Shown: one piece after another, positions 15,277 to 62,155 of the stretch
How positions within the stretch are numbered: the stretch's first letter is position 1
Layout of the letters: each line of letters begins with the position of its first letter
Source of the DNA: Takakia lepidozioides
Taxonomy: Eukaryota; Plantae; Bryophyta
Assembly (NCBI GenBank): GCA_030704615.1
Contig: CM060733.1
Coordinates: 53,444,001 to 53,508,000 of the forward strand
Length of the DNA stretch: 64,000 nt
Direction of reading: 5' to 3'
Translations under genes and position numbers: made by a program
The notes under the pieces: generated by a model
What the model was told of the DNA's origin: nothing
Seen by the model: the letters and a program-made list of their open reading frames with translations, nothing else
Databases searched by the model: none

Positions 15277-15329
15277 GGACCATGCGGCTGGACACCACAA
15301 AATCCTTACAAAAAAAAATTCTTTTTCTA

Positions 15330-29355: not shown

Positions 29356-29517
29356 ACGACCGAAGGTCGAGAGCTAGTTTAGCATAGAGCAGGAATAGGG
29401 TGCCATAATGCCACGTCATCGTCGCCACGTTTCGTCGCCACCTGTCGTAGCCACCTGTCGTCGCCACGTTTCGTACGTCGTCAATTTCTTTCTATCTGCC
29501 CGGATTGCCCGAAAAAT
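29356..29517 (+). repeat. Left arm terminus of a long inverted repeat (pairs with 62041-62155)
   Basis: ACGACCGAAGGTCGAGAGCTAGTTTAGC.TAGAG.AGGAATAGGGTGCCATA.TGCCACGTCATCGTCG... is near-identical to the reverse complement of 62041-62155. Confidence 0.9.
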
Positions 29518-29589
29518 CCGAAAATAACTTCTTGAACGGTACTTCGTCGAGACTGACCTTTTTCCTCTCTGCTTCTGTTTGATGTTCAA

Positions 29590-29591
<2 letters not shown>

Positions 29592-29623
<32 letters not shown>
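29592..29623. repeat. (GA)n microsatellite
   Basis: Direct reading. Confidence 0.95.
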
Positions 29624-29628
<5 letters not shown>

Positions 29629-30037
29629 ATGGCTACATAGGTTGTTAAGGCCTGGCATTTAGAACAGGTTTAGCTAGGTTTGGCTTGCCAAGGCGATCTA
29701 TAATATACAGCCATGAAGTGTCAAGAAGGGTTAGAAAGAGCTCGACTGTGCGGAGGGCATTTCTTTAAACGGCGCATCCAGGAGAGCGTTCTCCAGAGGA
29801 AAAAAGGTGAGCATATTTATCCTTCACAATGGTGGGACAACCTACATAGCAAGGTGTGGGCTTTCTTCTTACATGATGTAAAGAAGGTTTTCTGTTCTGC
29901 AAAAGTGGTTGTCTCTGTCTGTATCATAGATTGTTGTTCCTAAAAAGGCCATGAAATTGCATTGCGCAAGGGTTTTTCTTGGTGTTTACAAGGTACTTGG
30001 GAGGGTCTTCTTGGTTTTGGGAGGCCGTCTTGAAACT

Positions 30038-31165
30038 ATGGCTGCCCTGGAAAAGGGCAAAGATGTGCATGGTTGTATTGCCAAAGCTGGAATTGTACCA
30101 GATGTGATTCTGAACAATACCCTCGTTGACATGTATGCCAAATGTGGGGGCATTGAGGATGTGGAGGGAGTGTTCAACAATATGGCTGAACGAGATTTGG
30201 TGTCATGGAACGCCATGCTTGTAGGATATGCACAACAGGGGTGCGGGATGGAGGCCTGGGGGAAGGGGTGAAGCCCGACCACATCACGTTTGTGTGCGTT
30301 TGCAATGTGTGTGCAAGCTTGGTAGCCCTGGAAAAGGGCAAAGAGGTGCATGGTGACAACTTGTACCAAATGTCATTCTGGACACTGCCCTGGTTCACTT
30401 GTATGCGAAATGTGAGTGCAATGAGGATGCAAAGGGAGTATTTGACAATATGGCTGAATGAAATGTGGTATCGTGGAATGCGATGATCGCAGGATATGCT
30501 CAGCATGGTTGTCATAGGGAGGTCCTGCAACTATTTGAAGGAATGCAAAAGAAATGCTTGAAGCCGGACAGTATCACCTTTATATGTGTTCTCTCTGCAT
30601 GCAGCCACACTGACCTACTGAATGAAGGAAGATGCTACTTCGATTCCCTGAGTCAAGATCATTGTATCAATCTGACAGTAAAGCACTTTGGCTGCATGGT
30701 GGACCTTCTTGGACGTGCGGGACAACTGGATGAGGCAGTGGACCTGATTAATAAAATGCCAATCAATTCAGATGTTGTGGTGTGGAAGGCCTTGCTTGGT
30801 GCCTGCAGAATCCATGGCAATGTGGAGATGGCTGAATGTGTGGCAACATCTATCTTCAAGTGGGATGAACAGGATGCCGCGACTTATGTGTTGCTATATC
30901 AAACATCTATGTTGCAGCTGGCAGGTGGGATGATACTGCAAAGGTGAGAAGAATGATGAACGTTAGATGGGTTAGAAAGGAACCAGATGACAAGTTGCAT
31001 CCCAGAATTAAGGAAATTCATGCTGAGCTCAGAAGATTGTTTGGGCAGATGAAGGAGGCGGGGTATGTGCCTGACACACGCTTTTTATTGCATGATGTGG
31101 AGAACAGGAATTTTCTCTTTGCCACCACAGTGAGAAGCTGGCCATTGGTTTTGGGCTGATCAACC
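30038..31165 (+). pseudogene. PLS-E-DYW PPR pseudogene (RNA-editing-factor-like), frameshifted, DYW truncated
   Basis: LVDMYAKCG, VSWNAM, ITFICVLSACSH, HFGCMVDLLGRAGQLDEA, WKALLGACRIHGN, MKEAGYVPDT, HSEKLAIGFGLI. Confidence 0.9.
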
Positions 31166-31799
31166 ATATCATCCCCATATCATGCGTATAAGCCCTGCTG
31201 AATGTACTCACCATGAATTTGGTCCCCCCTTGGTCGTTGGAAGCCCTGGCCCACTTACTTAGTGACTTCTGGCCGACCAGATTTCGCCTTCCGTTTCTTC
31301 CCTGTTCTGGATAGCTTTTACTTCCCCCTTAGCTGCACGGTTCTCCTCCCTCCCCCGCATCGTCACCCGTATTTTTTGCGCACGCTTCGGCTCCCCCTCA
31401 TCCTTCGGGGGTCTTTGCTTCCCCTTGCCGATCCCCTCTCCGGTCTGCTCCCCCTTGCCCTTCATGTGTTCCTTCTCCTTCCCCTTATCCTTTGTTTCTT
31501 TTTGATCCACCTGCTCCATGCCCTGCAGGTTCACTTGGCGTCCCGAAGTTTTTGCAGCAACCCTATGCCGTGTTCGACCTGCTACTGGGCCAGATGATGG
31601 TTTGCCGGAGGTCAAACCCACGTGTAGGGGGGTTGGAGCAGAAACCATAGGCGCAAGCACCGTCAGACCCGTGGTGAATGTGGAGCCAGGGGTGACCCCC
31701 AATTCAAAAACACCCTTAACAGTTAATTGCCTGCCTGTGTGACTTCGTGAACTTGTGTACAATGCAGAAACCAAAATAGACTAAGGGAAAAGCTCCCAG

Positions 31800-32695
31800 A
31801 GGACAAGGGCTGCCTTGTTTTCTTCAAAGGCACTCCACATGAGTCCATTCTGGGTTCATGGGATTATCTACGGTTGTCAAAATTGTATGGGGAAGCGGGG
31901 GATGGAGGGGTGTTTTTGTATGCCAATATTTTGCAGCTATCCCTGGAGGAGAGTAATCGTTGCTGGTGGGCTGTGATGGACACACTGATATGGACGGCTT
32001 TGGAGGCATCATCCAAGGACGACCTTCGCAGGATTTCCAAAGGGCTTGTAAATGATTGGGTAACTGAGAAGTGCCTAGGGAAGGATCCAGATAAGGTTTA
32101 GACATGGTTCGTCCCCTTATGCTCAGCGTACGTCCCTCAATCCTCCTATTTTGCAGCTTTGACCAACTTTGATTTGATTTGGAGAATGGAAAGCATTAGT
32201 GGTGTCTGGCCTCAAACACATGTGCATTCTGCAGGGGCCATTGGAGTTTGATGGTTTTTGATAAGTCCAAGTTTGTTCATCTGAATTCCATGAAATCATT
32301 CAAATCCCATAGCCGACTTGCCTTTGAAACGCGTCTTCGCACTTTCAGAGCATACCTACACAAAGCCGAACCGGACTCATTACTTTGGAATGAAATAATG
32401 GCATGGGAGTGGCTGGAACCTGAGGTGCCAAAAACCAAGCGGCTGGGAGTGTGGCTACTTTGTAATGATTTTCATACAGAAATACTTGGAGACCAAAATC
32501 ACAAAAAAATGGGGGGCAACTTTTACAGCAGATTGGTTTACATGTGAGTACACAGTATCAAAGCAAGATTTTCTTTCTGGATGGATAGTGGATAATTGGG
32601 ATGATGCAGATTTGCAGCGTAGACTATCGCATGTGCATGCCTCGGATGCCTCAGATGTAGCTATTGTATCTCCATTCCCCACGAAAAAAAAATGA
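31800..32695 (+). pseudogene. Ulp1/peptidase C48-like SUMO protease remnant
   Basis: GHWSLMVFD...LNSM (His; the catalytic Asp position reads Asn) and frameshifted VPK-PSGWECGYFVM (Cys); probable intron at ~32095-32234. Confidence 0.6.
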
Positions 32696-32749
32696 AGCTT
32701 GTCCTCCTCTTTGTAATCCCTTTGTGCCTTCTTTGGCGTCCACTGTGCT

Positions 32750-34030
32750 GTGAAGGGGATGAAGGGGTGAGGGGGTGAGAGGATCCTTGAGGTGGATCAG
32801 ACAACCAGGGATGAGGGGGGCCAGGGGGGCTCAGGGGGCTCAGGTCAGGCGGTCGGGGATGAGGGGATGAAGAAGACAAGGGATTGTATAAGGGGTTAGC
32901 GGGGATCGGGGAAGCATGGGAACGAGGGGAGTGGCCGGGCAAATGAGGGGATCAGGGAACCAAGGGAATGGGTGGGGAGAACAGGGGAATGGTTGGGGAG
33001 ATCAGGGGATTAGGGAAGCAGGGGAACCGGCCGGGAGAAGAGGGGATCAGGGAACCAGAAACAGGCCGGGAGATGAGGGGATCATGGAGGGAATGTCGGG
33101 AGCTGGACGGGGGATAAGGGGATGAGGGGTCCACGGGGTGAGGGGATGAGGGAATGTAGGTTTCGAATCGGGGGATCGGGGGATTACTGGTGAAAAGTCG
33201 CGTGTGAAGGGGCAAGTTGTGAAAGGTCATGTCCGTGTTTTGCACTATGAAAGGTCACGTCCCTTGCATGTACGAATGGTGCATAAGCATGCAACAAAAA
33301 CTGAAAATAAGCCCCAAAGCAAAATCTGAAATTTGCCCAACAATGGCGGAGACCCCAGAGTCGGAAGATGACCCAGAGCCCACAAACTTTCGCTTTAGTC
33401 CAGACAGTGTCATTTGCTCTCTGAAAGGGACGATCATACTGAAGCATCGGTTTTATGGTGCACTTCCTTGCAATTGCAATGGTATCATCCTTTTCAAATG
33501 GAGAACTTTGAACTGGTGGCTTCACGTTGGAAGCGAATGTATAATGGTTATGAGACAAAATGGCTTTCCAAACCACATATACGGTGTCCGATATGTTATA
33601 TACACTATGGGAATCCAAATGGTTCCCACCGAGGTCACCACAAATGTCTCTCATACCACTGTGAATCGCACAAAACATCATGGGTCACTGAACACAAGGC
33701 GCTGGCTTCAATAATTGCCCCGCCGGATGACAGCCGCACTGCCTTGTTGAATGAACTCTTTGGGTGATACATGGGGGAGCAATGCACGGTGAAGGGGACC
33801 GGGCATATAAGTCCATTGCGAAGCCGCAGGGGATGGGGGGAATGAGGGGGAGTAGTGAATGGGAAGGGGATCACGGGGAGTTGAGCACAACATCGGGAAG
33901 CAGCGGTGTGAGGGGGCCAGCTGTGATGAGAAGGGGGATGAAGGGGATCAGGGAACCTCTGTCATTTCAGGGGAGCAGAGGCCGAAGCACTACACGAAGA
34001 GGGGGATGATGGGAGGAGGGGAGCAGTGTG
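32750..34030 (+). repeat. Two G-rich, purine-skewed low-complexity tracts (32750-33190 and 33770-34030)
   Basis: Dense GGGGA and GAGGGG runs on the + strand. Confidence 0.7.
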
Positions 34031-34133
34031 CTTGCAATGCAAAAAAGGTGGCAGGGAACGCACTAGAGACTGGTGGCAACCGTTTTTCAGTATTGGAATT
34101 CAGGATTGTTAATTTAAAGGCTAAACATAAAAG

Positions 34134-34340
34134 CAACGACGCAATGGCGTGAGCGTTGCACGTGAGCGCGCGAGCGTACGCTCACGCAGGAGGACGTGGC
34201 GTGAGCGTACGCTCACGCCAGCTGACGTGGCGTGAGCCTGCACACACGCTGACGTGGCGTGAGCGTCATGTCAGCATGCTGATGTGGCGGTAAATGATGA
34301 CGTGGCACTGTCCGTCAACTGCCACGTCAGCATTAACATG
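34134..34340 (+). repeat. Candidate terminus and subterminal repeats of the autonomous Mutator-like element
   Basis: CAACGACGCAATGGCGTGAGC followed by repeated GCGTGAGC, GCTCACGC and CTGACGTGGC. Confidence 0.6.
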
Positions 34341-34782
34341 CGCCGCCTATAACCGTGGATGGTCCTATTACCGTGGAATTAATGCAGGGAATCTTGCCTA
34401 AATAGAATCAAGACGAGCGTTGAGGCCTACAATTGCAGCATCCAACATTGTGCAATTACAAATGCTTGTTTCACTTTTACAATTACGAAGACGACAAAAT
34501 ATCCTCACAAAGTGTGCGCCATAAAGGCTGCCACGAGAAGACTTCCTCCCTCCTCAAATAACAATGAGAGTTATGATCATCTTCAAAAGATGATTGTAGT
34601 GCATAGCGACAGCAAGACATGTAGACTTCGAACGGTGCAATGACAAATGTGCACTACCTAAAAGTTGTCACTCAGACCTCACTCCGTATAGTTGGAGGCC
34701 ATATCATTGCACAGCCGACGAATTGATGTGAATTACACATTTCAAATCATGGTCATCCACATACCACATTACATAGTTCATG

Positions 34783-37700
34783 CTACCCATGTGTTGTATC
34801 CCGCTGCAAAAGAGTATCGACCTCGTTGAAACTCATAGTGGCCTGGTGAATGAAGTTGTCACGTTTGGGATCGCAAACCATCCTCCTCAAAAATATGAAA
34901 TACAAATGTTTGCAGGGTATGAATTTACCTCTCTTGCCCAAACTGGTTGATAGCATATTCACAAAATCAGGACATGTGCAATTGGGGAAATTGGAAACCG
35001 TGATGTCGTAGGTCCTGTCATGAACAGCAGATGTGGAAGTGATGATTGTGAATACCCGACCATATCCTGGATCGGGTACTTCCGTGGTGCTTCCGACACG
35101 AGCTTGGAGCATTCTTGCGGACTCCACTTTGCCAAAGTGTTCAGCGGTTGGAGGGAAACGCCGAACGAGCTTTCCATCTCGTTTGGTTGGCCACAAGTCA
35201 GGATTTGCCGGGGGGACCCGGGAGGACGCAGGAGTAGTAGCACATGCATGGAGTTGGGGTTGTCTCGCAAGGGAAAAACCTGCCTCCTCCAGCATTTCAA
35301 TCTCCTGAAAGCTGAGATGTGTTCCCACCTTCACGGGCCAAACGGTTGGAGGAGATGGCTTCATCACTACGGAAGGACGCACAGTTCCATGCACACATCT
35401 GGCACAATCATCTGCGCAGAACCAGAACTTGTGGTTCTTGGCTTCTGGTTGACCGTATGGACGCATCAAGCCCGTGAAAGTCGGAGCAGGAGTTCGGGCA
35501 CCACCTCTGGATATAGATGAAGTGCACTTCTCAAATTAGTTGCCCTGATCGCTGTACATTTCACACGAGACCCGACACTTGTGCGTTCTATGTGCCAAAC
35601 GTGGTCGGGGCATGCGGACTCAAGCACATCAAGGGGGTTGTTTCTCTCCTGCACCATTTCAGTGGCACGGTTTGATGCTGGAGCTTGCCGTCGTGTTGGA
35701 GGTTCCTCCACAATGGAGGTTCCGGACATGGAGCTGTCATGCAGGGGAACACGAGGCTTCGAGAAGTTATCACGGTCTGCCCTGTGGGAATCTGAATCCG
35801 AACCAGGTGGAGTGTTCAATTTCCTCTTACAGGAGCCGAATCTCTCCTCCCCTTCAAGATGTGGAACTCTAGAAACAAGTGGCGTTCCCTGGGCATACAT
35901 GCTCACCGCCCGTGCTATCTTGATTGGATCCCCAGATCTGTTTGCAGCACGCAACATCAACTCCCATTTGTCCGGACCCTTGCCACCAACCCCACCTCGT
36001 AAGAAATCACGGTATCGGGTTTGTTGTTGCAAGGCACGTATCAAATCATCTGTTGTTGCCACATACAAATCCCGACCTCGTTTCCCAGACTGCTGCAACC
36101 ATGCATTGTGCACAGTTTCTGCCAAATTGCAAGATGGCATGTCCGCCATTTCCTCAATGGACATGTTCTGCAAAGAGGATAACCACACTTCAGAATAGTG
36201 CACAGGAAACAACATAAAGAAAGCAATGAGTCAAAAATATGGAAAGCAAATGTATGAATAAAGCATGAAATAGAAGCCTCGTACCATTGTCATGGCTGCT
36301 CCCCACTGTCTATACCGGAAGTGCCAAAACGCCAGCCAATCTTCCAATGCTCTCATACTCTCAAGTGATGCAGCTCCAGAAGAGAACCACCAGGCACGAA
36401 TTGTCTGGAACAAAGTGTCCGCCTCCTTCATTGTTCTAGCATCTTTGTACTCTTTGCACAATTTACGGTGCTGAGTCTGCATCTCTGGTTTGATGTCCGA
36501 CTTTGTATGTTTTTCCAGAGATTGTGTCCAATGGAATAGACATGTACGCTCTCTTCCTGGCATAGGCACTTTTGGGTCGCCCGATCCGAAGACAATACGA
36601 ATAGCATTGAAATTTGCTTGAGCACTATCCGCCATGAAACCTGCGAAATTTGGAGATGGCAGCCCATGGCAGCCCATGACACGTATCAGGGAATTCCACA
36701 TGAGCTTCTGGGATTCCGTATCCTCGGATTGCATGTCACAAACTGCAATTGTCATAACTCGTTGGTACACTGGATCGTAGACATGACAAGCCATTGTCGT
36801 CCAATCCTTCACTCGTTTCACATGATCAAACATAAGAAAACAGTTCTGCAAGTCCCCAGTCTTCTGCATCCGCTTCACGAGGCTAACCCCACTGCCCTCC
36901 CCAACAGTCGACATTTTGAAAAGAAAAACTTTGATGGCACCTTGACCTGGGAATACATTGTCCTGGATGTAATCGTACTTGCTCAGTCGTTTCAATTCCA
37001 AAATATTGTCTATGTAGCCTCTGATCCCAGAGCCCATTCTCAATGCATTGATCTGATGCCGAATGTTAGGTGAACTTAAAGTGGAGAAATGATCCATGAC
37101 CAGGTCCAATGCTGCACCGTCAAGTTTAGTCCCCACAGAATCTCCTTCACTCAAAATATGGCTTTCCAAGAAGGACTTGCTTGCGCCAAGAGCAATTGCA
37201 GATGTTGTTGCGGATGGGTTTCTCCCGAACTCCTGTTTGATCAACCTCGATACTGTCTCAACACTCTCCCTGTAATCCCCCTTCGAGACAGGATGGTTAT
37301 GGAATCCAAAATGCACACAAGCTCTCGTCATTGTATTCAAACGGTGGACAACATAGTACATTCTTGCTCCGCAGAGCGCCAAGCAGGATGGCACAAGTTT
37401 GCAGAATTTGCAGACGAAAGTGTTTGCCGGTGGAGGGGCAGTCCCAGGCTGAAATGGATTCTCCGCCAGACCCTCCCATTCGCTTTGATTATGAACACCA
37501 GACTGAAGAAAGTGTCTGCAATTCAAATTATCACACCTAAGGTGTCCATTGCAAACTGTCCTCCTGAAAACAAGCTTGTCATCATTCTGAATATTGGATG
37601 TTTTTGTTCTGCACCACGGGTGCCCGTCGTGTTTCTTGTCCATTCCATGCATCATGATTGTTACACCTCCAACTCGCGGAGGAGGAGGCAGCTCGAATAG

Positions 37701-38296
37701 GATATCGCCATCAAAAGTCTCCGGCAAGAACTTCACAGGCACCTGCTTCAAAGATTCCCAATCAATTCCCCGCAACTCACTTTTGAATCCAGCCATTCCT
37801 CCCATCGCCCGCAATTTTGGAATGACACTACAAATCTCTTCTTCATCAGCTTCTGCAACCCAGTAGGAAGGACTGGATTTGGAATTTCACTTATGTCATC
37901 ATCGGAAGAATCCGAAAGCTCAACGATTGGAGTGGAGGAAGTCTGTTCTTTTTTCACCACCACCTCCCTCTTGTCTTCAACGACCGAAGCAGCAGTCCCG
38001 GGCGTCACATATGACCCAAGGGACTTTCGCCGAGGCTCTCCAAGTACTCTGTATCGACCAGGACGCACTCTCCACTGGCTGATATGAGCCGTCTCATCAC
38101 GGTTTTGGAAAGAATATTTCACCAACTTCCCTTTCAGATCGTAAACCTCTTTCTCCAAAAAGATGGAGCCATTCTGCAGCTGAAAACGGGTAGCCAAGAC
38201 ATGTTCCAGAACAATTGCAAATCCATTGTCAAGGACTTCCTGGGAGAACGGCACTGGTTTGTCGTCTGAGAAGAACTCCGCTTCAGAGGAAGCCAT
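34783..38296 (-). pseudogene. Mutator-like DDE transposase with an N-terminal GCM/WRKY-like zinc domain and a C-terminal SWIM finger; two apparent frameshifts and one short intron
   Basis: PWCRTKTSN...RRTVCNGHLRC...CKFC...GFHNHP (GCM-like); FLMFDHVK (D1); FMADSAQA (D2); RTCLFHW (CxxH); CNLAETVHNAW (E); CTCPDF...PCKHLYFIF (SWIM). Confidence 0.8.
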
Positions 38297-42769: not shown

Positions 42770-43269
42770 NNNNNNNNNNNNNNNNNNNNNNNNNNNNNNN
42801 NNNNNNNNNNNNNNNNNNNNNNNNNNNNNNNNNNNNNNNNNNNNNNNNNNNNNNNNNNNNNNNNNNNNNNNNNNNNNNNNNNNNNNNNNNNNNNNNNNNN
42901 NNNNNNNNNNNNNNNNNNNNNNNNNNNNNNNNNNNNNNNNNNNNNNNNNNNNNNNNNNNNNNNNNNNNNNNNNNNNNNNNNNNNNNNNNNNNNNNNNNNN
43001 NNNNNNNNNNNNNNNNNNNNNNNNNNNNNNNNNNNNNNNNNNNNNNNNNNNNNNNNNNNNNNNNNNNNNNNNNNNNNNNNNNNNNNNNNNNNNNNNNNNN
43101 NNNNNNNNNNNNNNNNNNNNNNNNNNNNNNNNNNNNNNNNNNNNNNNNNNNNNNNNNNNNNNNNNNNNNNNNNNNNNNNNNNNNNNNNNNNNNNNNNNNN
43201 NNNNNNNNNNNNNNNNNNNNNNNNNNNNNNNNNNNNNNNNNNNNNNNNNNNNNNNNNNNNNNNNNNNNN
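42770..43269. other. Assembly gap (500 N)
   Basis: N run. Confidence 1.
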
Positions 43270-44249
43270 CAGGAAGTAACCTATGATGTGAAGCGCACCC
43301 AATAATCTGCCCTTCATCTTCCTTGGATCATTTTCGAGGGATGGAGCTTCTCAATGCTGGTTCGGGTCGCTCTTGCGACCCATATGTTACACCGATGGCT
43401 TTGCTGATAACCCCGGCTGTTTTCTACAAGCCCTGGCGTCCTACTCCAAGCACAACATTCTTCCCATGGCTAGCTCGCTCGACGACGAGGTTCTCCTGCC
43501 ACCATCGCTATACGTGGACCGACTCCGCTCTCCGTCCCCTCGCCGCCATCTGTACTCTCCCTCCAAGGTCTGCAGTACAACCCTATGGCATTCCACTCCA
43601 GAATCTTCAATGTTGGCCACCAAACTCGCTCACAACCAGCCTGTTCATTCTGTGCTTCTGTAAGTTCTCAATGCTCCTGTGGTTGTTTTTATGGTTTTCT
43701 AGTGTCGAGTCCTCGTACGCGAGTTGCGCCCATGTGTGGACTCAGCACTGCTACTTGCTTTTACCCTCTTGCATAATGTCAAAGCCACTGCGATATTCTG
43801 GAGGGCGCTGGTCTCTGGATGCCCGATCTGTTGTGCAATTGGGCTACCCCAAGCACTGCATTGGTCCTTTCTGTCATCGTGAGTTTCTCGTCGTTCACAT
43901 GTCATGCCTCACCGCGCACCACGCGAGCAACCGCCCAGCCTGCTGGCCCACTCTACTTTTGTTAATACGAACTCCAGCACTCCCACCCAAGATCTTGGCC
44001 TGCTTAAGCTCGAGCGGGCGACTGGAGGCCACAGGATAGCGAAGTCGAGATGGCCAACGTTTATCTCCGTCAGACTGCTGCGAAGACTGCGGTACGACCA
44101 GCGGATGGCTCGCCCGAATCTGCCCCAGCCTGCAAGTATCTCTCCCTCGCCAATTGCACCGCGATGGGCCTGACCCTGCCCCCACTTCCTTCGCCACAAC
44201 TGCAGCACACAACAAAGCCCAATCAGATTGACGCTCCAATGTACATCAC

Positions 44250-45215
44250 AACCCTGAATTTCGAAGTTCTAGCTGATATCATCAAAGCTGGAATCCCATC
44301 ATATATGAATCTGGAATATACCCTTGTTGATCTATATGCCAAATGCGGGGGCATGAAGGAAGCGCGGGCCTCTGTCAACAATATGAATCAGCGAGATGTG
44401 TTCCCATGGAGCTCCGCTGACTGCAGGATATGCCCAGCATGGTTGTGAGGGAAGCTTTTGAATGTATGTACAAATCAATGCGAAGGGTGCAAGCCCGACA
44501 GTTTAACATTCATTTAATTCTCAGTATGTGTACCACTCTTCCAGCCCTGGGAAATGACAAATTTGTCCCATTCTGACATAATCAAAAGCTGGAATCTCAC
44601 CTGATATCAATCTGAAGACTGCCCTTGCTGATATGTATGCCAGTGCTCACCAGCTCCACCTGTCTCAACCTCTTGTCATTGATTCTCATTATGCTTATGG
44701 CCCTCTAAGCAAAGATCTTCTAGCTCTCTAGCGATTTATCCCTGCCCGGCCGCACCAGAAGCGGCAGGCCAGGTTGAATGCCATGTCAAGCTGTAATTGT
44801 TGTGGAGACCTATGATCAAATGATGGGGGAAGGGGTGAAGCCCAACCACATCACGTGTGTGTGCATTTGCCATGCTTGTGCAAGCCCTGGCAGCCCTAGA
44901 GAAGCGCAAAGATGTCATGTTGACATCATCAGAGCTGGAGTGGTACCAAATGTTGTCTCCAGCCTCAAACTTGCAAATAAGCTGCCAGGTATGCACACGT
45001 TCCCTGAATTATCAGGCATGGAGTTTCATGTTGTTATCATCAAAGCTGGCATTATGCAAATTCAATCTGAAGACTGCCCTTTCTTAACATGTATGCCAAA
45101 TGCGGGAGCTTAATGGATGCAAGCCATGTGTTTTTGATGACACCTTAAACGAGCTGGGTTTTCTCATTGGAGTACCATGATAGCTTGATATGCTGAAAAT
45201 GGATGCGGTACAGTG
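44250..45215 (+). pseudogene. PPR (PLS-type) fragments
   Basis: ADIIKAGI...LVDLYAKCGGMKEA; ETYDQMMGEGVKPNHIT; heavily frameshifted. Confidence 0.8.
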
Positions 45216-48150: not shown

Positions 48151-48555
48151 TGTATAAGTCGTATTTGAACCCAAAGTCGATCGGTATATTCCTTCCAAAA
48201 TATAAAGCGCTCGTCGACCCATACAAAGACAAGTTTCTTCTGGATGAACTCAAACCGCACCTGGAAGAGTTGCGGTTATCCGGAAAAGACGCTGATATAG
48301 TCAACGTGGAAAAACCTATAGGATGTCCACCATATAATGACCCAAGGTCAAATGCCTCTTACTATAGGATTTGCAGTGTCAGGTTTATCTTAGAAAACAA
48401 AAAAATTCTAACGCTTTCTTGGAACAGATTGAAATGTAGATGGCTGCTCTAGATTTTCCTGAACCTCGACTGTCCAGTGGACGTTGCTCCAAATGTCAAT
48501 CATGTCATTGGTTTATCTTGATTACCACCTGAGTGGCTGTATGAATTTCTCACAG

Positions 48556-49287
48556 ATTGCAGCACCAGTTTCTCTAGTTGGGAAAGGATTGCGCTTGATA
48601 ATATTTGACCTGAATGGAGTTTTATGCAAAGTCTTGAAGCACCAGAAGAGCTACAGTGTCCCCTGAATGTCCGAGACAGACTACAGGATACCAGCTCTTG
48701 TTGGATTTCGACTTGTCTATAGGCGGGAAAAATATCGTGAGATGTGGACAGAGTTGAACAAACATTTCCATCTAGGTATATGGAGCTGCATGATGTACAA
48801 GAACTTGCAGCCTATCCTGGACTTTATGCTTCGGAGTCTTCCTCAGCCGGAATCTGTTATGTCTCGGGAAGATTGTATCTCCTGTCCTACTTCTGTCCAC
48901 CCTCAATTTATATCAGGATACGACCCGCCGAGTCTGTTCTTGAAGCCATTGATGACGGTCTGGCAAAGATTTGGTGGTCAGTACAATAGGAGTAACACTC
49001 TACTCATTGACGATTCTGCTATTAAGTGTGTGTTGAACCCGCCTGAATCCTGTCTGATTCGAAAATCGTTTGAATCCGTTGAGACGGACTCTTGCTATCT
49101 CCAGAAGGTTCTTCAGAAATATTTACTTGAAATGAAGAAATCTCGCACCGTTTCCAGTTATCTCAAGGAAAAGATGATAGGACTTAAGCCTTGTCAGAAT
49201 GTTTCCACCGATCCCAAGTTTAAGCCTCTCCTGGATTATGTTGATGATTCTAATTATGGGAATCTCCGATATGATGCTTCAAAATAA
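48556..49287 (+). pseudogene. FCP1/NIF-like HAD phosphatase homologue 1; in-frame stop at 48664-48666
   Basis: LIIFDLNGVLC, FHLGIWSC, FLKPL...W, NTLLIDDSAIKCVLNP. Confidence 0.75.
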
Positions 49288-50893: not shown

Positions 50894-51721
50894 ATGAAAC
50901 GGATGTTGTTAATTTTGAGTGTCAACGGACTCCTCTGCTACCGGCCACCCCCAACCGGCGGTGAACTGTTTAAGGAGAAATTTCATTTCAGGAATGTGAC
51001 ACTTCAAGTTCCTGACAGACCGTTTGTGGTGCCTTGGCCTGGAGTCTTGGAGTTTCTGGACCTTGCATTGAAGCATTTTCATGTGGCCATTTGGTCATGT
51101 GCTGATAGAGGTGTTCTTTGTAGGATGTTGGAGAGCTTCGTCCCCACGAAAATAGCGAAGAAGTTTTGCTTCATATGGTCTGCTGAGGATTGTAAGGATA
51201 CCACCGGTTATATGAGGCTCGGGATTAAATATCTCGTGAAGGATATTCGAAGTGTTATTGTCAGGTACCCTGGTAGACCATTTGCTACGAAGGGGCAAAT
51301 ACTTCTTGTAGATGATGAGCCATCAAAAGGCCTGCGAAACCCACAAAATACTGGATTTTTCCCTTTCTCATTCAAGTCTTCACCAAACGGATTGCATGAC
51401 CGGGATGATATGACAAAAGCAGTGTGGCCATATATATCGGAGATGGCTGGAGCTTCAACAGTCATTGATTACATTAGCGAGAACCGGGCAAAGTGTTCTC
51501 ATAAGCCTATTGGTCGAGACCATGCCTGCTGGGTCTGGTATGGAAGATATCTTGATCCTCGTATTTGGATCCCACGACAAAAGGAACCTGATTACCTTGG
51601 TAGGCACGTGGATCCCACTGTTCTGTTGTTTGTTCATAATTTGATTTTCCAATTTTTTTGCAGCTGCATTTGCACTCTTACCTCAATATATCCATATGCA
51701 AAACTTCCACTTTGGGCCTAA
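50894..51721 (+). CDS. FCP1/NIF-like HAD phosphatase homologue 2, lacking the nucleophile Asp
   Basis: LLILSVNGLLC, PGVLEFL, FHVAIWSC, LVKDI, ILLVDDEPSKGLRNP; open 275-aa frame. Confidence 0.7.
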   Translation: MKRMLLILSVNGLLCYRPPPTGGELFKEKFHFRNVTLQVPDRPFVVPWPGVLEFLDLALKHFHVAIWSCADRGVLCRMLESFVPTKIAKKFCFIWSAEDCKDTTGYMRLGIKYLVKDIRSVIVRYPGRPFATKGQILLVDDEPSKGLRNPQNTGFFPFSFKSSPNGLHDRDDMTKAVWPYISEMAGASTVIDYISENRAKCSHKPIGRDHACWVWYGRYLDPRIWIPRQKEPDYLGRHVDPTVLLFVHNLIFQFFCSCICTLTSIYPYAKLPLWA

Positions 51722-54389
51722 CATTTGTCATTTCCATCGCTTGTCCCCAGTTACATTCAAGGAACGAATTCTAAAAGAGGAACAAAAGCTGCGTGATTGG
51801 GAAGAATGGCGGGCGTGTCGGGAGGCTTCAAGGGCATCAAGTAGAGTTGGCAGTAACATTTCAGATGACAATGTCAGCCGGTTTCACCTTCCTGAAAGTA
51901 TCTCCGTGTCCTCTGGAGCGGAGACCGTTGCAAGTGACTGTGGTAACCGAAGGCGTCTTCGGACACATACCTTGACTGCGAGCCGTTTGGGAGGAGGCTC
52001 AGTAATATTAATGAGTTAGTATAAGCCGTAATTGTTCTATGGCTTCAGAATCTATGGCTTGTATGGCATTTAGTCCATGAACGGATGGACAGTTGACGTT
52101 CATTTTTCTGTTGGTCCATCGCCTTGAATGATATAATCTCAAATAAAATATGAATGTTTCATATCATCAATCAGATCCCGACAGACTCATTTTTCCATGT
52201 TGTCCTGTTCATCACATGCCATCATTGTTTAATATTTGGTTCTGCCATTATTCCAAGTTTGTTTGTGTATGTCATTTTGGATATCGGAGCTCTCATCATT
52301 GTTTGATTCATTGCATCCTCCCATTCCTTTTAATGAACGTCAACTTGGCAGTGGATGTTCATCTAAGACCACAATACATACTTGTATTTTTGCGTAGAAT
52401 GTGTGGAGGATTACATAATTTGTTGTTATATAGTGCACAAATAGTCAAATAATTATAGATATATCTCTTTATTTCTATTATAGATTATAATTATTCATAT
52501 CTTGTATTATTTCTGGACCAAACAAAAGTCCAGAATTAGTTAAATAGAGTTATATCTCTTATTCAAAATACAGCTCCTATATCAGATTCCCACTCGGAAA
52601 AACTTCTCAACCGCTCCCTCTCCCTAGGGAATGCCAGCCTACTGTCAGTCCAAGGATCAAAATGCCAAGCTTGGGACTCGGCTGTCAAACAGATTTTGGA
52701 CTCCCCGCCTGCCAAGAAGAGGAATGAACAGTTGGACCCTATGATCCTTGAAGCGACCTCTGGGTCTTCTGACCAAATTACCAAAAAACAAAGGGATAGT
52801 CAATTGGGAGATCAAAGTGGCAACCATCTGAGCAACCTCCACCTCCTGCCCCCCTGCCAATCCCTCGGATAATTAGTTAGTTGGAAGCAGCGAAGACTAA
52901 AAGAAAGGCTAACAACAACATTCTAAAGAAGCACCCGGTGGAACAGACTCCTAGACCAATTCCACTCCCTTCTCCCATTGCGCACAACCCGGTCATTGCA
53001 AGAATCTGTGCTAAGCTATGTACTTTCCCTACACTTGCACTCAGAGGCTGCATGCAGCTCAATTCCAGAGGAGACCCGGTGGCCACTTGTCTCACTCCAA
53101 TGATCTGTCGCAGGAAACCTAGCCCTGCATTCATCGTCACAGCTCGGATAACATGAACTTCGACTCAATCTGGATTTCAGTGCAGGATGTTCAATCTTAT
53201 GCAACAAAATCCAGGCCTACTTTCCATCTAACCTCCCACTCTACTCTCTTCTCTCCCACTCTGCTGTTACTTGGGGGTCTTACGCTGAGGCCTTCCTCGG
53301 ATTGCGCCAGGGCCTTACCCCCAACACTAACGTCATCCTAGATCTTATGGACGAAGCAGTGCTCGTCAGCAACACCAGTTCTCTTAATCCAGGGGTTTGG
53401 GCAGAGCCAGAGCACTTCGACGAGCCATGCACCCCAAGCAAGGCATTGACCAGAATAAGAGACAACGTTCACAATGCCTTTACTGTGCTCCGCACAATCC
53501 TCGAAACAGAATTGGACGAGCAGAATGAACAAATCAACCTACGACCTAATTGGCTCCATATCCACCTCCAGCTCCTCCGACCTGCAAATCTCTCAGTTCC
53601 TGTCTCAGCAGGCGCCGCCCTCCTCCCAGCAGCCCTTGAGGTCCATTAGGCCTCCACTCTCTATGCAGTCCCCGCTGCCCTCACCAACACCTGCGCCAAT
53701 CACATCATCCCCTATTCCTAAGTCGCCAAGAAACCAGAGCGTCATCCCTCCCTTCTCCATGCCTTCCGAGCAACATGGGGCAAGCATGGGATCATTTGTA
53801 GCTGCGCTCATGATCTCACCTATATATGGGCGGACAGAATCCCCTCCTGCTGGCATGGACACATAGGTCACCTTTTTGGCTTCCCCACAATTTGAGAGAT
53901 CCGAAGTCAATTGGAAGCACGTCAAGCCTTCCTTAGCAGCCAGACTCCACTTCCATAGATAAATCTCTCGGTCCTTTATATTCCTCCTCCTCGTAGCTTC
54001 ACTCCCCTTCTTCCCCTCTAGGCCTCTCTCCCCTTCACCCCCTCTCGCTCCTACCACAGTTCCTGCTACCCTCCGCCTCTCTCTCAAGGGTTCATAGTCA
54101 CTCCGTTCTGTCCTCAGCTTTTGCTAGGGCATTCGTTCGTTCGGCCTCTTCTTCTCTGCCCACTAATGGTTATCGCATGGTCTCCATGCCCAAGTATTGC
54201 AACATTCCGTTATGGTAACACTGCGTTCTGACGAGACTGTTGGCCTCCTAGTCCTCATGGTGTCGATTTTTAAGGTCATTTTTAAAAGTCCATGGTGTCC
54301 TCGTTCTTCGCTATTGTTCGAGAGTTCTCCAACAACTCTCCAACACGGCATACCGTGAGAATAAGCCTTATGGCAGCCTATGGGCAATC

Positions 54390-55431
54390 AAGGGTTTAAT
54401 TTTTTTCCCTTTAATAATCTTTCAATACATCTAGGGCCTCTGTCCCCTGTTCCCTTTCAAAAAAAACATTTATATATCTTAAATATATACATATATATAA
54501 ATTATAAATTAAAGTACTTTAGAATTAACCATCACAGTATATATATATTTTTAAGGGAATCGCCTGGGAGCGACTTCTCACAAATCAGGCCCCTTGATAG
54601 AGAGAGGAGAAAATAACCTCTCGGTAACCTCGCCGTAAGGCTTTTAGATGCGACACCGCGCAGGGAAGGGGGAGAAGACCGTACCAAACTCGTCAAGTAG
54701 CAGGATTTGACCCTGGGGTCATCCGGATGGCACTTAGTGCACTTTACCAACTGAGCTACTGACTATTTCATTCTTTTGTACATCAAGTATGTATATGTCT
54801 ATTGTATACTAGGGCTTCTTGTTGCTCCGCACTACTAGCGACGACTTCTAAGAACAACATCCATATAGATGGGCTATATTCAAGTTTTATGAACAGATGA
54901 ACATTTATTGGCTTGTAGAGAGAGACAACCTTACATGTCAAGCCTCGGATTGGTGTGTTGTGCTGATCCTTTCTTCTTATATTTTGCCGAAACAAGAGAG
55001 CCCATTGCAATTTAGGTTCCTTCATATTGTTAATCGTTACTCGTTAATCGATTGATGATCTGTTCATTTTATGTTTGATGTTTACAAAATCATCCGATGT
55101 TGTGCTTATCTCTACCATCGTACCTGAGCATATGCTTGAGTTTTTTTGTGACGAAGAGTTTTGCACTCATCTAGGTTCACAACGGTGTTAGGTTGCTAAC
55201 AAAAGAAAAACCTTGCCAACAAATTGAAAGTGGCAAAGAATGATTTCTCAAGTACTTCAGCTCAAAGCCCAAAATTTATTTCATTTGATATCAATTCGAC
55301 CGGTGTAATAATGACTGTGGCTCATTTTGATACAACAAGTTAGTAGATTTGGATTTTTTTTTTCGTTTTGTTTTTTGGAAAAGGGGACGATGGCCCTGGA
55401 AATTTATTAAAAGTGAAAAAATTAAACCCTT
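54390..55431. mobile_element. MITE-like element with imperfect TIRs, containing a SINE
   Basis: AAGGGTTTAATTTTTT...GGGCC.CTGTCCCCT matches the inverted AGGGGACGATGGCCC...AAAAAATTAAACCCTT. The GGGCC.CTGTCCCCTGTT motif is shared with the 25.7-26.4 kb minisatellite. No clear TSD. Confidence 0.55.
54560..54765 (-). mobile_element. tRNA-derived SINE
   Basis: Minus strand shows TAGCTCAGTTGG (A box, 54747-54758) and GGTCAAATCC (B box, 54703-54712), followed by a non-tRNA body. Confidence 0.65.
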
Positions 55432-55784
55432 ACCTAATGCATTTGGATTATGAATGTTGTTTATATGATATCTTTTTCATTTTTATTTTCAATTGGTTTA
55501 GATTTCAAATCATTTGGATTTTCATTTAATGTCACAGTTCCATGAAAAAGCTTTGTTGTTTTCTAGTTAATGCATATTTGTTCCAACGTTCATCATGTAT
55601 TTTGTCTTTAATTAAAAGACAAAATATTAATTTGCATTAATATTTTGTTTTTCCATATTATTTGAAGTTATACACATGCTCAAGTTATTTTGATAAAAAT
55701 CTTTGTCTTGATATATGGATATTTTGTTCTGCCACTTTTTGATACCATCTCTCTATCATTTTCACTCGTGCGACAACCAGCATG

Positions 55785-55886
55785 TAACCCAGTGGTAATG
55801 GGCACATACCACGTTGGATGTGGTTGTGGGTTCAAACCACGATTTAGTGTGCCATGAAGGTGTCCTTAGGAAGGTAGTAGCCCTTC
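55785..55886 (+). repeat. tRNA-derived SINE-like fragment
   Basis: TAACCCAGTGG and GGTTCAAACC boxes; homologous to 4887-4990. Confidence 0.5.
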
Positions 55887-56179
55887 GGGGTGAAGTGACT
55901 CCATAAGTTACGCTTCCTTCGGGAGGTGTCATACTTTTTTCACTCGAGCTGTGCAAAATTGGATGCCATCCTTGGGGCTGGTATATGTCCAAAAGAAGTC
56001 TATGAGATTTGTAAGTATGTCAGTCTGAATATTACAAAACAGTCTCCTCTAATATGGGCACTTGGTTGTATGTGGTAGGCACTGTGTCTTGAATCTTGGG
56101 CCATGCAGCTTTACTATATGTTTTAATTAAGGGACCATTAAAATTGTTAGTATTGCCAGCCTCATGTACACCTACTCAA

Positions 56180-58330
56180 AAGATACCAGCACATCTAAGG
56201 TGGTTATCCTGTTGGAATACATATCCAACAGGGTATTTTCGAGAATGCTATCTTGCACAATTCCACCTTTCAGGATGTCAGCACTGAGCATGCACCAGTC
56301 TGACCTTCTCCAGGGCTGCCAGGCTGGCACAAGCATGGATAACACAAATGAATGTGACCTGGTCAGGTTACTCTTCTTCCTGTATCATTTGCTCGGAAAT
56401 CTCCAAACCCTCCCTACCACATCAATGCTGGGCATATCCTGCAATCATGGCATTCCATGAGATCGCACTTCTTTGACCCATGTTGTCAAACACTCGACGT
56501 GCATCAGTTATGCTCCAGCATTTGGCATACATGTCCACCAGGGCAGTGTCCAGAATGATATCTGGCTCTATTCCGGCTTTCATGATGTCAGCATGGACCT
56601 CTTTGCCCTTCTCTAGGGCTGCGAGGCTGGGGGAAGCCTTCAGCACACAAACAAACATGACTTGATTGGGTGTCACCCTTTCCTGTATATTTGCTCGTAG
56701 ATCTCCAAAGCCTCCCTACCACACGAATGCTGGGCATATCCTGAAATTATTGCGTTCCATGAGACCACACTGCGTTGGGCTATCTTGTCAAACACTTGAC
56801 GGGCCTCCTCAATGTTCCCGCATTTGGCATACATGTCAAGCAAGGCAGGTTCTATCTGGCACAATTCCAGCCTTTTGAATGTCAGCAAGGACCTCCTTGC
56901 CCATCTCCCAGGCTGCGAGGCTGGCACAGACATTGGCAACACAGACATGTGACCTTGTCATGGGTCACCCCTTGCTGAATCATTTGCTCATAGGTCTCCA
57001 AAGCCTCCCTACCACACCCATGCTGGGCATATCCTGTGATCATTGTCTTCCATGCGACCACACTGCGTTGAGCCATATTGTCAAACACATGACGGGCATC
57101 CTGTATGTCGCCGCATTTGGCATACATGTCAACTAGGGCAGTATCTAGAACAATATCTGTCACAATTTTAGCTTTCATGATGTCAGCATGGACAACTTTG
57201 CCCTTCTCTAGGGCTGCCAGGCTTGCACAGTCATTGACAATGCAGATGAACATGACCTGGTCCGGTGTCACCACTTCTTGTATCATTTTCTTCTCCAAAG
57301 CCTCCTTACCAAACCCATGCTGGGCAAATCCTGCAATCATTGCACTCCATGACACCACATTTCGTGTATCCATTTTTTCAAACACTCTGTTTGCATCATA
57401 TATACTGCCACATTTGCAATAAATGTCGATGAGGGCAGGTCGAGTATGGTATCTGGCACAATTTCGGATTTCGTGATATCAGCATGGACCCCTTTGCCCT
57501 TCTCCAGCACTGCCAGGCTGGCACAACCACCAAGAACGCAAATGAATGTAACTTGGTTCGGTGTCACCTTTTCCTGTATCATTTGCTCATCGGTCGCCAA
57601 AGCCTCCCTAAGACTCACTCTTGTCCATCATCCCCCATGGAAAGAAAAACATATCAGTTCTGCCAGAATCCCTGTCCTCTACTGAAAAGAAGTAGGCCCA
57701 GATACCAAGTTAATTTCAGCAGAAGTTTAGATATTTGGTACCGATGCAGTGAGAAAGAATGGCACAAGGCCAGCTGCAACATCAGCCCATATAGCTTTTG
57801 CAAGCACTGCTGGTGACAAGGTAGTTTGTAGAGGCATCTGTTTGTAGTGGTAAAAAATTGTTCATGTTGATGCCAGTTATCTGTATACGATCACAAAGAA
57901 AGTTAGACAACGGGTACGTAAGGTCCAACCAGAAAGAAGAATAAAATACAGGAGAGGAAGCAGGGAGGGGTAGTAAGAGCCTGGGGAGGATCTGTTGATT
58001 CTTGTGCGAGATGTCTACATGGCAGGCCTTTTGCACACATGAATGGCCTTGATCCGAAGTGCATGACAAGCTTACCCAGCGCTTCAGCCTCAGATATGCC
58101 ATATGCTGGCACATGCATTGAGGATGCAAATGAATGTGACCCCGTTGGGAGTCATTCCTTCCTGTTGCATTAGCTCATACATCTTGAAAGCCTCCCTACC
58201 ATACACTATGCTTGGCATATCCTGCTATCATTATATTTCATGAAGACATATCTCGGTCAGGCATTCTTTCAAACACTTGTTTCCAGTCTATGACATGGAT
58301 GAGCAATCATGGATAACCTCAAGGATTTAC
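56180..58330 (-). pseudogene. PLS PPR motif array, pseudogenised
   Basis: Repeated VSWNAMIAGYAQHG, VTPNQVTFICVL, LEKGKEVHADI, ALVDMYAKCG; frameshifts and an internal insertion at ~57615-58010. Confidence 0.9.
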
Positions 58331-58649
58331 CCACTCTCTATGTTCACCAACTTTCATGCCCTCGAGGCTGAGCCTAAAGCTTCCCCAGCCCCGTTGGGGT
58401 CTCATAGCTGGCAGCTCACACACAACATCTTCATTTGTATATTAAGGAGAAGTGGCAGACTGACATGATGCTACACACTACTAGTGCTAAAATTGCTCGT
58501 GCAGAAAGATGTTAATCAGGACATGAGATAAGAGAAAAAGATCAAGGTTCACCTTGTAAAAGATTGCGGCCACGGCCACCTCAATTGTAGAAGCCACCAC
58601 TGCTAGACCTTCCTCTCATGTCTGATAACTCCTTGTTTGGTCAACCCTA

Positions 58650-61600
58650 CAAAACCAATTTCTCATCACTAATCACATACCTTGAACTGCCTGTGAACGA
58701 ACCAAAGCTTCTCCTCATCTCTGTTTTTGTCAAAGTCAATCCAAACCACCACAGATCCACCCAACGAGCTAACTTACAAAATTCAATATGCATCTCAGGG
58801 CCGAGTCTGATGAGAGGGAAAAACAGGCTGAAATAGGTCGAAAAGCTTGTGTCTGTAGTCAGGTAATGGTGGATTGGTCTGTGAGAACCACCACGGTGCA
58901 GCAGAGCAGGCAGAGATTGAAAACCATGCACCTCTTTGCCCTTTTCCAGGGCTGCCAGGCTTGCACATGCATTGCAAATGCACACAAACGTGATGTGGTT
59001 GGGCTTCACCCCTTCCCCCATCATTTGATCATAGGTCTCCAAAGCCACCAACCCATGTCCCTGCTGTGCATACCCTGCAAGCATCGCGTGCCAGGACACA
59101 ACATCTTGTTCAGCCATAGTGTTGAAAACTCCCTTCGCATCCTTGGCGTGAATCCACTTTGGATAATGTGAATGTGCACCTGCTTTCTAGCTTCCAGACC
59201 TTTGATCTTGATGCACTTAAGCAAGAGACAGACAAACGTATCTAAATCTGCTGAAATGCCTCCCACATTTGGCAGACATGTCCACGAGCGTATTGTTCAG
59301 AATGACATCTGGTACAATTTTTCCAGGGCTGCCAGACTTGCAAACGCACAGATGTGATGTGGTCGGGCTTCACCCCTTCCACCATCATTTGTTCATAGGT
59401 CTCCAAAGCCTCCATCCCGCACCCCTGCTGTGCATACCCTGCAAGCATCGCGTTCCACGACACCACATTTCATTCAGCCATATTGTTGAACACTACCTTC
59501 GCATCCTCGATGCTCCCACATTTGGCATACATGTCCACGAGGGCATTGTTCAGAATGACATCAGGTACAATTCCAGCCCTGACAATGTCGCCATGGGCCT
59601 CTTTGCCATTTTCCAGAGCTGCCAGGCTTGCACATGCATTGCAAACGCACACAAAAGTGATGTGGTTGGGCTTCACCCCTTCCCCCATCATTTGCTCATA
59701 GGTCTCCAAAGCCTCCACCCCACGTCCCTGCTGTGCATACCCTGCAAGCAGCGCGCTCCACGACACCACATCTCATTTAGCCTGCATATTGTTGTTCAAA
59801 ACTGCCTTTGCATCCTTAATGCACCCACATTTGGCATACATGTCCACCAAGGCAGTATTCAGAATGACATCTGGTACAATTCCAGCTTTGACGATGCAAC
59901 CATGGACCTCTTTGCCCTTTTCCAGGGCTGCCAGGCTTGCACATGCATTGCAATCACACACAAACATGATGTGTTTGGGCCACCCCTTCCCCATCATTTG
60001 ATCATAGGTCTCCAAAGCCACCATCCCACGTCCCTGCTGTGCATACCCTGCAAGCATCGCGTGCCACGACACAAAACTCCCTTCGCATCTGGTACAATTG
60101 CAGCTTTCGCGATGCAACCATGGGCCTCTTTGCCCTTTTCCAGGGCTGCCAGGCTTGCACACGCATTGCAAACGCAAACAAACGTGATGTGGTTGGGCTC
60201 CACCCCTTCCCACATCATTTGATCATAGGTCTCCGAGCCACCATCCCACGTCCCTGCAAGCATCGCGTGCCACGACACCACATCTTGTTCAGCCATAGCG
60301 TTGAAAACTCCCTTCGCATCCTCAATGCACCCACATTTGGCATACATGTCCACCAGGGCAGTGTTCAGAATGCTTTGACGATGTCACCATGGACCTCTTT
60401 TCCCCTTTTCCAGAGCTCCCAGGCTTGCACACGCATTGCAATCACAAACAGATGTGATGTGGTTGGGCTTCACCCCTTCGTGCAGCATTTGCTCATAGGT
60501 CTCCAAAGCATTTCTACCACACCCATGCTTGGTAAATCCTGCCAACATTATATTCCACGTGATCAAAGATCGATCGTTGAGGCATTCGGTTGAACACTTG
60601 GTGAGCATCCATGATGCTCCCGCACTTAACACATACATGTTGACAAGGGTGTTAAGGAGAAAAACACTTGGCGTGAATCCACTTTGGATAATGTGAGTGT
60701 GCACCTGCTTTCCAGCTTCCAGACCTTTCATCTTGATGCACTTAAGCAAGAGACAGACAAACGTATCTGAATCTGTTGGAATGCCTCCGACATTTGGCAT
60801 ACATGTCCATGAGGGTATTGTTCAGAATGACATCTGGTACAATTCCAGCTTTCCCAATGCAACCATGCACCTCTTTGCCCTTTTCCAGGGCTGCCAGGCT
60901 TGCACATGCAAACAAACGTTATGTGGTTGGGCACGGGCGTCGCGTACACCACACCTTTTCCAGAGATCCCAGGCTTGCACACGCATTGCAGACACAAACA
61001 AATGTTGAGCTTTTTTCTCCTCATCTCTGCTATCTGTTTTTGTCAAAGTCATTCCAAACTACCACAGATCCACCCAACGAGCTAACTTACAGAATTCAAT
61101 ATGCATCTCAGGCCGAATCTGATGAGAGGGAAAAACAGGCTGAAATAGGTCGAAGAAGAAGGTGCCTTCACCACATTGTCCTTGACAATTCAGTATGCAT
61201 CTCAGGGCAGAGTCTGATGAGAGGGCAAAACAGGCTGAAATAGGTCGAAGAAGAAGGTGCCCTCACCACATTGGCCTTGACCTATGCGAATTGCGTCTGC
61301 TACTCTCTGTCATCTAACAGGCATTCAACTTTTTGCCTCGGTTGTCCCACCATTGACTGGGGTCAGAATTCAACATGGAAATTTAGGGCTGATCATGAAT
61401 ATATCCTCAGCCTTGCTGCTAGCAGCTGACACTGACGTCGTGAAATTCTTCCAACAAACACCCCAACCCTACTTATTACAGTAGCACCCAACGAGCTAAC
61501 TTACAGAATTCGATATGCATCTCAGGGCCGAGTCTGATGAGAGGGCAAAACAGGCTGAAATAGGTCGAAGAAGCATGTGCCCTCACCACATTGTCCTTGA

Positions 61601-61760
61601 CATTGTGCCATGACCCATGGAGGATTTGACCGACCATCAACCCAAAAGGACCTCTTGTGTGTGCTGCTTCCGGTAATGTCGGATTGTTATGTGAGAACCA
61701 CCACGGTGCAGCTGAGCAGGCAGTGATTGAAACACGGCCTGCTAAGACCAAGCTGACTAT
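58650..61760 (-). pseudogene. Scrambled PLS PPR pseudogene array with a duplicated N-terminal segment
   Basis: Several ~300-bp P-L-S triplets of high nucleotide similarity. CLLLKCIK.KGLEA.KQVH occurs twice. The leader segment repeats at ~58760, 61075, 61195 and 61490. Confidence 0.9.
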
Positions 61761-62040
61761 CCCAAGAACCTTGTAAACATCAGGAAGAATACCAAATCAT
61801 GGTACTAACAGGAGCCGCCGAGAGACCACATTTGCAGGATGGACAAACTCTTCACATCGTACATTAAGCAAAAGCCACACCTTGCGATTGCGGTTGTCCC
61901 ACCATTGTGCAAATTCCTGTGAGAGCTCCTGCGATGTACTCATAATCTGCAAATGGAAATGTCTCCATCTGCGATCGGACGAGGGGGCATCATCCTCCCT
62001 TCCCCGCGCACATTTCTCCCGGGTTTTTTTTTTTCCCGTT

Positions 62041-62155
62041 ATTTTTGGGCAGTCCGGGTAGATAGACGACGTACGAAACGTGGCGACGACGATGACGTGG
62101 CACTATGGCACCCTATTCCTACTCTACGCTAAACTAGCTCTCGACCTTCGGTCGT
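62041..62155 (-). repeat. Right arm terminus of the long inverted repeat (pairs with 29356-29517)
   Basis: ...CCCTATTCCTACTCTACGCTAAACTAGCTCTCGACCTTCGGTCGT. Confidence 0.9.

Follow-up and report, generated by a model that had tools for sequence, protein, structure and literature searches.

Transposons of the Helitron2/Helentron (HLE2) type insert into T-rich sites, with a T before the 5′ end, and make no target-site duplication. Their 3′ ends carry an asymmetric inverted repeat, which is an 8- to 15-bp copy of the 5′ repeat located ∼20 to 50 bp from the end, beside a hairpin. At the opposite end of Helitron2, the 5′ repeat lies 0 to 2 bp from the terminus and pairs with the nucleotides that follow it into the 5′ hairpin; the members listed include one from Selaginella, and transposition by one end alone has been reported (PMC3627910). 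The Fusarium elements FoHeli1/2 start with TCAGCC-GAA-GGCTG-AC (PMC5148889), and land plants also contain HLE2 elements, for example HelenSM92 of Sphagnum (PMC11417382). Non-autonomous relatives of the Helentrons, DINE-1/HINE, carry microsatellites or tandem repeats (PMC4067079). The locus described here is found in a 64,000-nt stretch of the genome of Takakia lepidozioides (assembly GCA_030704615.1, contig CM060733.1, positions 53,444,001 to 53,508,000), referred to below as the window. It comprises two inverted arms, each of which leads from an outer, hairpin-bearing end (the head) through a leader into sequences of the pentatricopeptide repeat (PPR) type with PLS architecture. An earlier note on this DNA had offered two readings of the 32.8-kb block bounded by these arms: two opposed copies of a non-autonomous rolling-circle element with PPR cargo, or a single giant foldback element. 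The analysis favors, with a rough probability of 0.55, the reading that the arms are the 5′ ends of two distinct, convergently placed copies, both tail-less, of a non-autonomous Helitron2/Helentron (HLE2)-type family. The first of the two suggestions is thus the best supported one, even though part of the reasoning given for it fails. All positions are those of the window, to which the searches for repeats, tails, and further copies also apply unless stated otherwise.

The two heads and their outer boundary

The outermost sequences of the arms, 29356-29435 and 62155-62073, are inverted copies of each other with 92.8% identity over 83 columns of the BLAST alignment, and an inverted-repeat search delimits a 69-nt core that is 96% complementary between the arms. 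The first 28 nt are identical in both heads and are present just twice, once per strand, where 100 shuffles of the window give an expectation of 0. Each copy is made up of a head of ∼115 to 170 nt, a diverged leader, and PLS-PPR fragments that are oriented like the head (Table 1). The arms had been described as near-identical, which is true of the first ∼80 nt and does not extend beyond them: farther inward the two copies differ in the number of 13-nt repeats, in indels, and in the (GA)16 microsatellite of the left copy, with an identity of ∼78% along the stretch that can be aligned. Head and leader are then separated by DNA without similarity between the arms (∼300 nt in the left copy and ∼120 nt in the right one).

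The weaker homology that had been noticed farther inward consists of two leader blocks, one pairing 29825-29909 with 61909-61825 (76.7% identity) and the other pairing 29973-30031 with 61789-61731 (79.7% identity). The number of differences is 6 in the terminal 83 nt versus 32 in 145 nt of leader (Fisher p = 0.003). Such a better-conserved head fits a cis-acting end and not a single neutral duplication.

In the pairwise alignment, the outer flanks of the two copies are unrelated as far as the base that precedes ACGACC, and identity sets in thereafter. The boundary of similarity is therefore sharp and lies in both arms 1 nt outside the terminal hairpin CGACC-GAA-GGTCG, which bears out the abrupt stop described earlier. 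Inward from this boundary, the hairpin is followed by AGAG and then by CTAG, the latter being contained in a second small stem, GCTA-GTT-TAGC. Perfect hairpins (stem of at least 5 nt, loop of 3 to 5 nt) number 301 in the 64 kb; a GAA or TTC loop is found in 5 of these, including the two head hairpins, so that a random breakpoint would rarely fall 1 nt off one. As had been stated, the pair is not framed by a target-site duplication, even when offsets of up to 5 nt are allowed; the best match between the flanks is one of 5 nt out of 7, with offsets of 5 and 2 nt, and does not adjoin the ends. Taken together, the boundary that coincides with the hairpin, the uneven conservation, and the non-colinear cargoes (see below) favor an end of a mobile element over a plain duplication. 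The nhmmer profiles of the head and of both leader blocks recover just the two known copies in the window, and BLAST searches with both outer flanks find no second copy there that could serve as an empty site. An exact metagenome scan with the 21-nt motif that combines the hairpin and CTAG returned 0 matches.

The closest resemblance is to the 5′ end of Helitron2. The hairpin begins with the first nucleotides, 1 nt from the end, within the distance known for Helitron2 (PMC3627910), and it is of the same C-GAA-G type as that of FoHeli1/2 (PMC5148889). The lack of a target-site duplication, the gene-fragment cargo, and copies that share the 5′ end only are further features in common with Helitron2/HLE2, and the head has the appearance, and probably the function, of an HLE2 5′ end. 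Its two-stem fold, the subterminal tandem repeats, and the microsatellite of the left copy also speak for an end of this type. The locus differs from these elements in that no 3′ asymmetric repeat, 3′ hairpin, or Rep/helicase is found here, a T precedes the 5′ end of only one copy, and the cargo consists of PLS-PPR sequence. The ends, which are non-coding, are reminiscent of DINE-1/HINE in their palindromes, subterminal and tandem repeats, and microsatellite, but the 13-bp subterminal inverted pair, the 3′ stem-loop, and the boundary T strings of that group were not found at this locus (PMC4067079). DINE-1/HINE elements are also small, whereas the copies described here carry kilobases of gene fragments.

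Canonical Helitrons (Helitron1) are arranged differently: their interior is followed by the hairpin, 10 to 12 nt, CTRR, and the flank, the 5′ end starts with TC, and insertion takes place between A and T. The earlier note had taken a hairpin near CTAG as characteristic of Helitron/Helentron ends, a comparison that breaks down for the canonical 3′ end, since CTAG is on the inner side of the hairpin; the match is to the 5′ end of Helitron2 (PMC3627910, PMC5148889). The locus does have in common with canonical Helitrons a hairpin near the end, a nearby CTAG, gene capture, and the lack of a target-site duplication. However, the order here is flank, hairpin, AGAG, CTAG, interior, the end is ACGACC with no 5′ TC, and the flanking bases are G or T, with no A/T site. 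With CTAG on the inner side of the hairpin and not in terminal position, the two copies do not fit Helitron1.

Several further sequences in the window bear some likeness to the heads or adjoin them. A perfect hairpin, CCAGAC-GAA-GTCTGG, lies in AT-rich DNA at 22834-22848 (+) and could represent another Helitron2-like head or be due to chance. The left head is preceded, at a distance of 17 nt, by a T7 run and, farther out, by the stem CCAGG-AA-CCTGG (29295-29338, +); this segment resembles the hairpin-plus-T-run tail of a neighboring element and has no second copy in the window and no match in the Rfam and tRNA scans. The look of a short interspersed nuclear element (SINE) that the left flank had suggested was dropped because these same scans gave no match. 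At 34168-34237, a 31-nt tandem repeat (2.3 copies) is centered on the palindrome GCGTGAGCGTACGCTCACGC, and ACGT-core motifs resembling those of the heads are found close to it, at 34288-34352.

Table 1. Positions of the features discussed in the text
Feature	Position	Strand	Remarks
Left head	29356-29527	+	Terminal hairpin, second small hairpin, 13-nt subterminal repeats, short conserved stretch
Right head	62030-62155	-	Inverted copy of left head
Terminal hairpin CGACC-GAA-GGTCG	29357-29369 (left); 62142-62154 (right)	+ (left); - (right)	Perfect stem
Second small stem GCTA-GTT-TAGC	29373-29383	+	Contains CTAG
13-nt tandem repeat	29410-29474	+	4.9 copies, ACGT-core motif; fewer copies in right head
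(GA)16 microsatellite	29592-29624	+	Left copy only
Left leader	29821-30036	+	Two blocks common to right copy, 77-80% identity
Right leader blocks	61727-61913	-	
Left cargo	30039-31165	+	5′-truncated PLS-PPR pseudogene fragment with E1/E2/E+ and DYW start
Non-PPR pieces	61071-61732	-	Between right leader and PPR array
Right cargo	56170-60915	-	Scrambled, frameshifted PLS-PPR array of ∼300-nt units, without E/DYW
Third PPR fragment	44050-45113	+	Same lineage, without preceding head or leader
MULE-like open reading frame set	34783-38296	-	SWIM match below Pfam cut-off
Assembly gap	42770-43269	.	500 N, between the arms
Two NIF/FCP1-type phosphatase open reading frames	48667-49284; 50894-51718	+	2 kb apart; Pfam E = 1.7e-09 and 2.7e-08

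PPR sequences carried behind the heads

In agreement with the initial description, similar PPR DNA faces inward in both arms (85-94% identity over 98-225 nt). Each arm had also been credited with a PPR gene, but what it holds is a frameshifted fragment, and sequence of the E/DYW type is present on the left only. The left cargo begins in the middle of a PPR motif at 30039, directly behind the leader, and includes ∼3 PPR motifs, the E motifs, and the first ∼45 residues of the DYW domain. It is spread over the overlapping open reading frames (ORFs) 29951-30271, 30205-30486, 30465-30947, and 30944-31159, with the frame passing from 2 to 1, to 0, and back to 2, i.e., with three frame changes in 1.1 kb. 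Its PPR repeats match Pfam with E = 2.7e-20 and its E+ motif matches weakly; the reading stops at ∼31165, in the conserved start of DYW, ahead of any catalytic motif. Neither blastn nor tblastn finds another match to the E/DYW part in the window.

The right cargo is ∼5 kb of PLS sequence that extends down to ∼56170 and is broken up into many short ORFs in all frames. Some of its ∼300-nt units are 87% alike (59338-60072), which points to a recent internal tandem duplication of this array. The non-PPR pieces located at 61485-61732 recur at 61071-61281 and 58758-58922, and a 95-nt tandem repeat is found at 61093-61281. The two cargoes are non-colinear and differ ∼five-fold in length, yet they are joined to the same leader. 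Just past the inner end of the right PPR array, the segment 55789-55865 forms a 77-nt inverted repeat (83%) with 4914-4988; tRNA-like box motifs can be recognized in it by eye, and it probably represents a short interspersed repeat.

Each cargo is a dead fragment, and neither copy contains an intact PPR-DYW gene of the kind that the earlier note supposed to have been captured: with frame changes on both sides, the DYW domain cut off on the left, and E/DYW absent on the right, an intact PLS-PPR-DYW editing factor is not encountered. A protein word search with the ORF that spans leader and PPR sequence retrieved PPR proteins of other plants at 41-43% identity and no close relatives, in a collection that does not include this genome. 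The third PPR fragment of the interior, which lies 0.8 kb from the assembly gap, matches the right array with 96% identity along 84 nt. As it has neither head nor leader, PPR sequence of the same lineage also occurs outside the context of the heads.

Missing tails, the assembly gap, and rival explanations

Several observations weigh against the assignment of the heads to two HLE2-type copies. Downstream of either head there is no inverted copy of the hairpin, even with up to 2 mismatches (perfect hairpins with GAA or TTC loops are likewise absent there), and reverse-complement 10-mers of the first 80 nt occur in the window nowhere but in the partner copy. BLAST comparison of 31160-33900 and 52900-56200 with the window revealed no tail common to both copies, and no Rep/helicase was found among the 20 window ORFs scanned against Pfam, a scan that was not exhaustive. 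The stability calculated for the hairpin is only modest: the two-stem fold predicted for the head in single-stranded DNA amounts to -6 kcal/mol (z = -3.4 on the left and -1.5 on the right). The base that precedes the head is T on the right and G on the left, which agrees with the T preference in one copy only; the copies examined, all from the window, are two only; and inverted ends around a MULE-like transposase also resemble an element with terminal inverted repeats (TIRs). Given that neither a 3′ partner repeat, nor a tail hairpin, nor a Rep/helicase is found in the window, membership in HLE2 is not shown.

By analogy with the known elements, a Rep/helicase encoded elsewhere would nick the DNA at the head and peel off one strand. 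Peeling would normally end where the 3′ subterminal repeat pairs with the 5′ repeat, beside the 3′ hairpin; if this stop were missed, downstream host DNA would be carried along, which would explain both the cargo and the fact that the copies share the head only. The tail-less state of the copies would agree with transposition by one end or with a bypass of the 3′ stop, as described for Helitron2 elements (PMC3627910), and equally well with a later truncation. Both copies are dead, with no recognizable tail and a frameshifted cargo, and the intervening DNA does not belong to a single element.

The alternative that comes next is a local inverted duplication, in which a PPR gene was copied along with its promoter and its 5′ region, followed by decay of the two copies. 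The head would represent promoter DNA, and its ACGT-core repeats (CCACGTCA-like) would be transcription-factor sites. The presence of several such repeats in the head agrees with this explanation, as do the mere two copies visible in the window, the lack of a tail or of a transposase of matching type, and the occurrence of the third PPR fragment without a head. Nevertheless, a duplication is unlikely, because the similarity stops exactly at the terminal hairpin, outside of which the flanks of the two copies are unrelated, conservation is significantly higher in the end than farther inward, and the cargoes are neither colinear nor close to each other in length. A fold-back duplication primed by a hairpin would place that hairpin at the center of the inverted repeat and not at its outer ends.

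The heads could also be the TIRs of one large cut-and-paste element, either a Mutator-like or Pack-MULE-like composite or a foldback element, with the transposase inside and PPR sequence near both ends. Mutator-like elements and Pack-MULEs have long TIRs that resemble each other over their full length and generate target-site duplications of 8 to 11 bp, and foldback elements combine long arms of tandem subrepeats with a target-site duplication. The Takakia locus shares with Pack-MULEs inverted ends of 100 to 200 nt (115-170 nt here, with 28 identical terminal nucleotides), gene fragments beside the ends, and a MULE-like transposase in the vicinity. The MULE-like ORFs, with their weak SWIM match, lie between the heads, and no strong inverted termini other than the heads surround them: no inverted repeat of at least 25 nt that could serve as their TIRs exists within 31100-56200, and positions 34134 and 52450, considered as candidate ends of a MULE-like element, show no similarity to each other. 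Against such an element stands the absence of any duplication, of 8 to 11 bp or of another length, at offsets of up to 5 nt, as well as the extreme end, which is a hairpin. The arms are very unequal, with a similarity profile that falls from 93% over the first 83 nt through indels and a ∼78% stretch to ∼300 nt without similarity, i.e., their structure diverges sharply after ∼80 nt. The SWIM match is below the Pfam cut-off and the 527-aa ORF of the MULE-like set has no Pfam match; the interior is a mosaic that includes a further PPR fragment and NIF-phosphatase genes; and the arms are on different contigs. A single TIR element is accordingly quite improbable. A foldback element was rejected, as the only subrepeats are the 13-nt units that extend over 65 nt of one arm and there is no duplication. 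The proposal of one giant foldback element or 32.8-kb unit is not supported in view of the missing duplication, the unequal arms, the unrelated mosaic interior, and the gap between the arms.

This assembly gap deserves attention of its own. The 1-kb sequences on either side of it do not overlap (at best there is a fortuitous match of 15 nt), a search for inverted or direct repeats linking the two sides was negative, and one ORF enters the gap from the left in one frame with no continuation demonstrated on the right. The arms thus sit on different contigs, and both their inverted orientation and their 32.8-kb spacing depend on scaffolding. That this arrangement of real heads is an artefact of a contig misplaced or wrongly oriented at a gap of fixed size (500 N), with no overlap and no feature demonstrably spanning it, is nonetheless very unlikely, as there is no positive sign of a mis-join (the two sides have similar GC contents of 0.470 and 0.463), and such an artefact would concern the arrangement only and not the identity of the heads.

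The region as a whole is a transposon-rich mosaic, and the interior consists of unrelated material that includes, besides the features listed in Table 1, further ORFs without family assignment. In the left outer flank, a fragment of a LINE-type endonuclease is located at 12286-12792 (-), and ORFs for Ty3-type gag, RNase H, and integrase are found at 14366-19044; direct repeats at ∼13 kb and ∼20 kb may be long terminal repeats.

Significance for PPR families of seed-free plants

Dispersed duplication via retroposition is at present the main explanation for the large PLS-DYW families of seed-free plants, and this model has been proposed for Takakia, hornworts, and lycophytes (PMC13386178). The earlier note had seen in this locus a transposon-driven route to the PLS-DYW expansion, but there is no sign here of a route to working editing factors: the locus comprises two dead, tail-less copies, with neither an intact gene nor a complete element. 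Its main value lies in a caution: when two inverted ends are separated by an assembly gap, they should not be taken for a single giant element. It is a long shot that the head family belongs to rolling-circle transposons that amplified PLS-PPR/DYW modules as DNA throughout the genome, with some of the copies now being working editing factors. If true, this would provide a second route to PPR expansion beside retroposition (PMC13386178), and a DNA transposon carrying PPR fragments would be a further source of PPR sequence and of chimeric genes.

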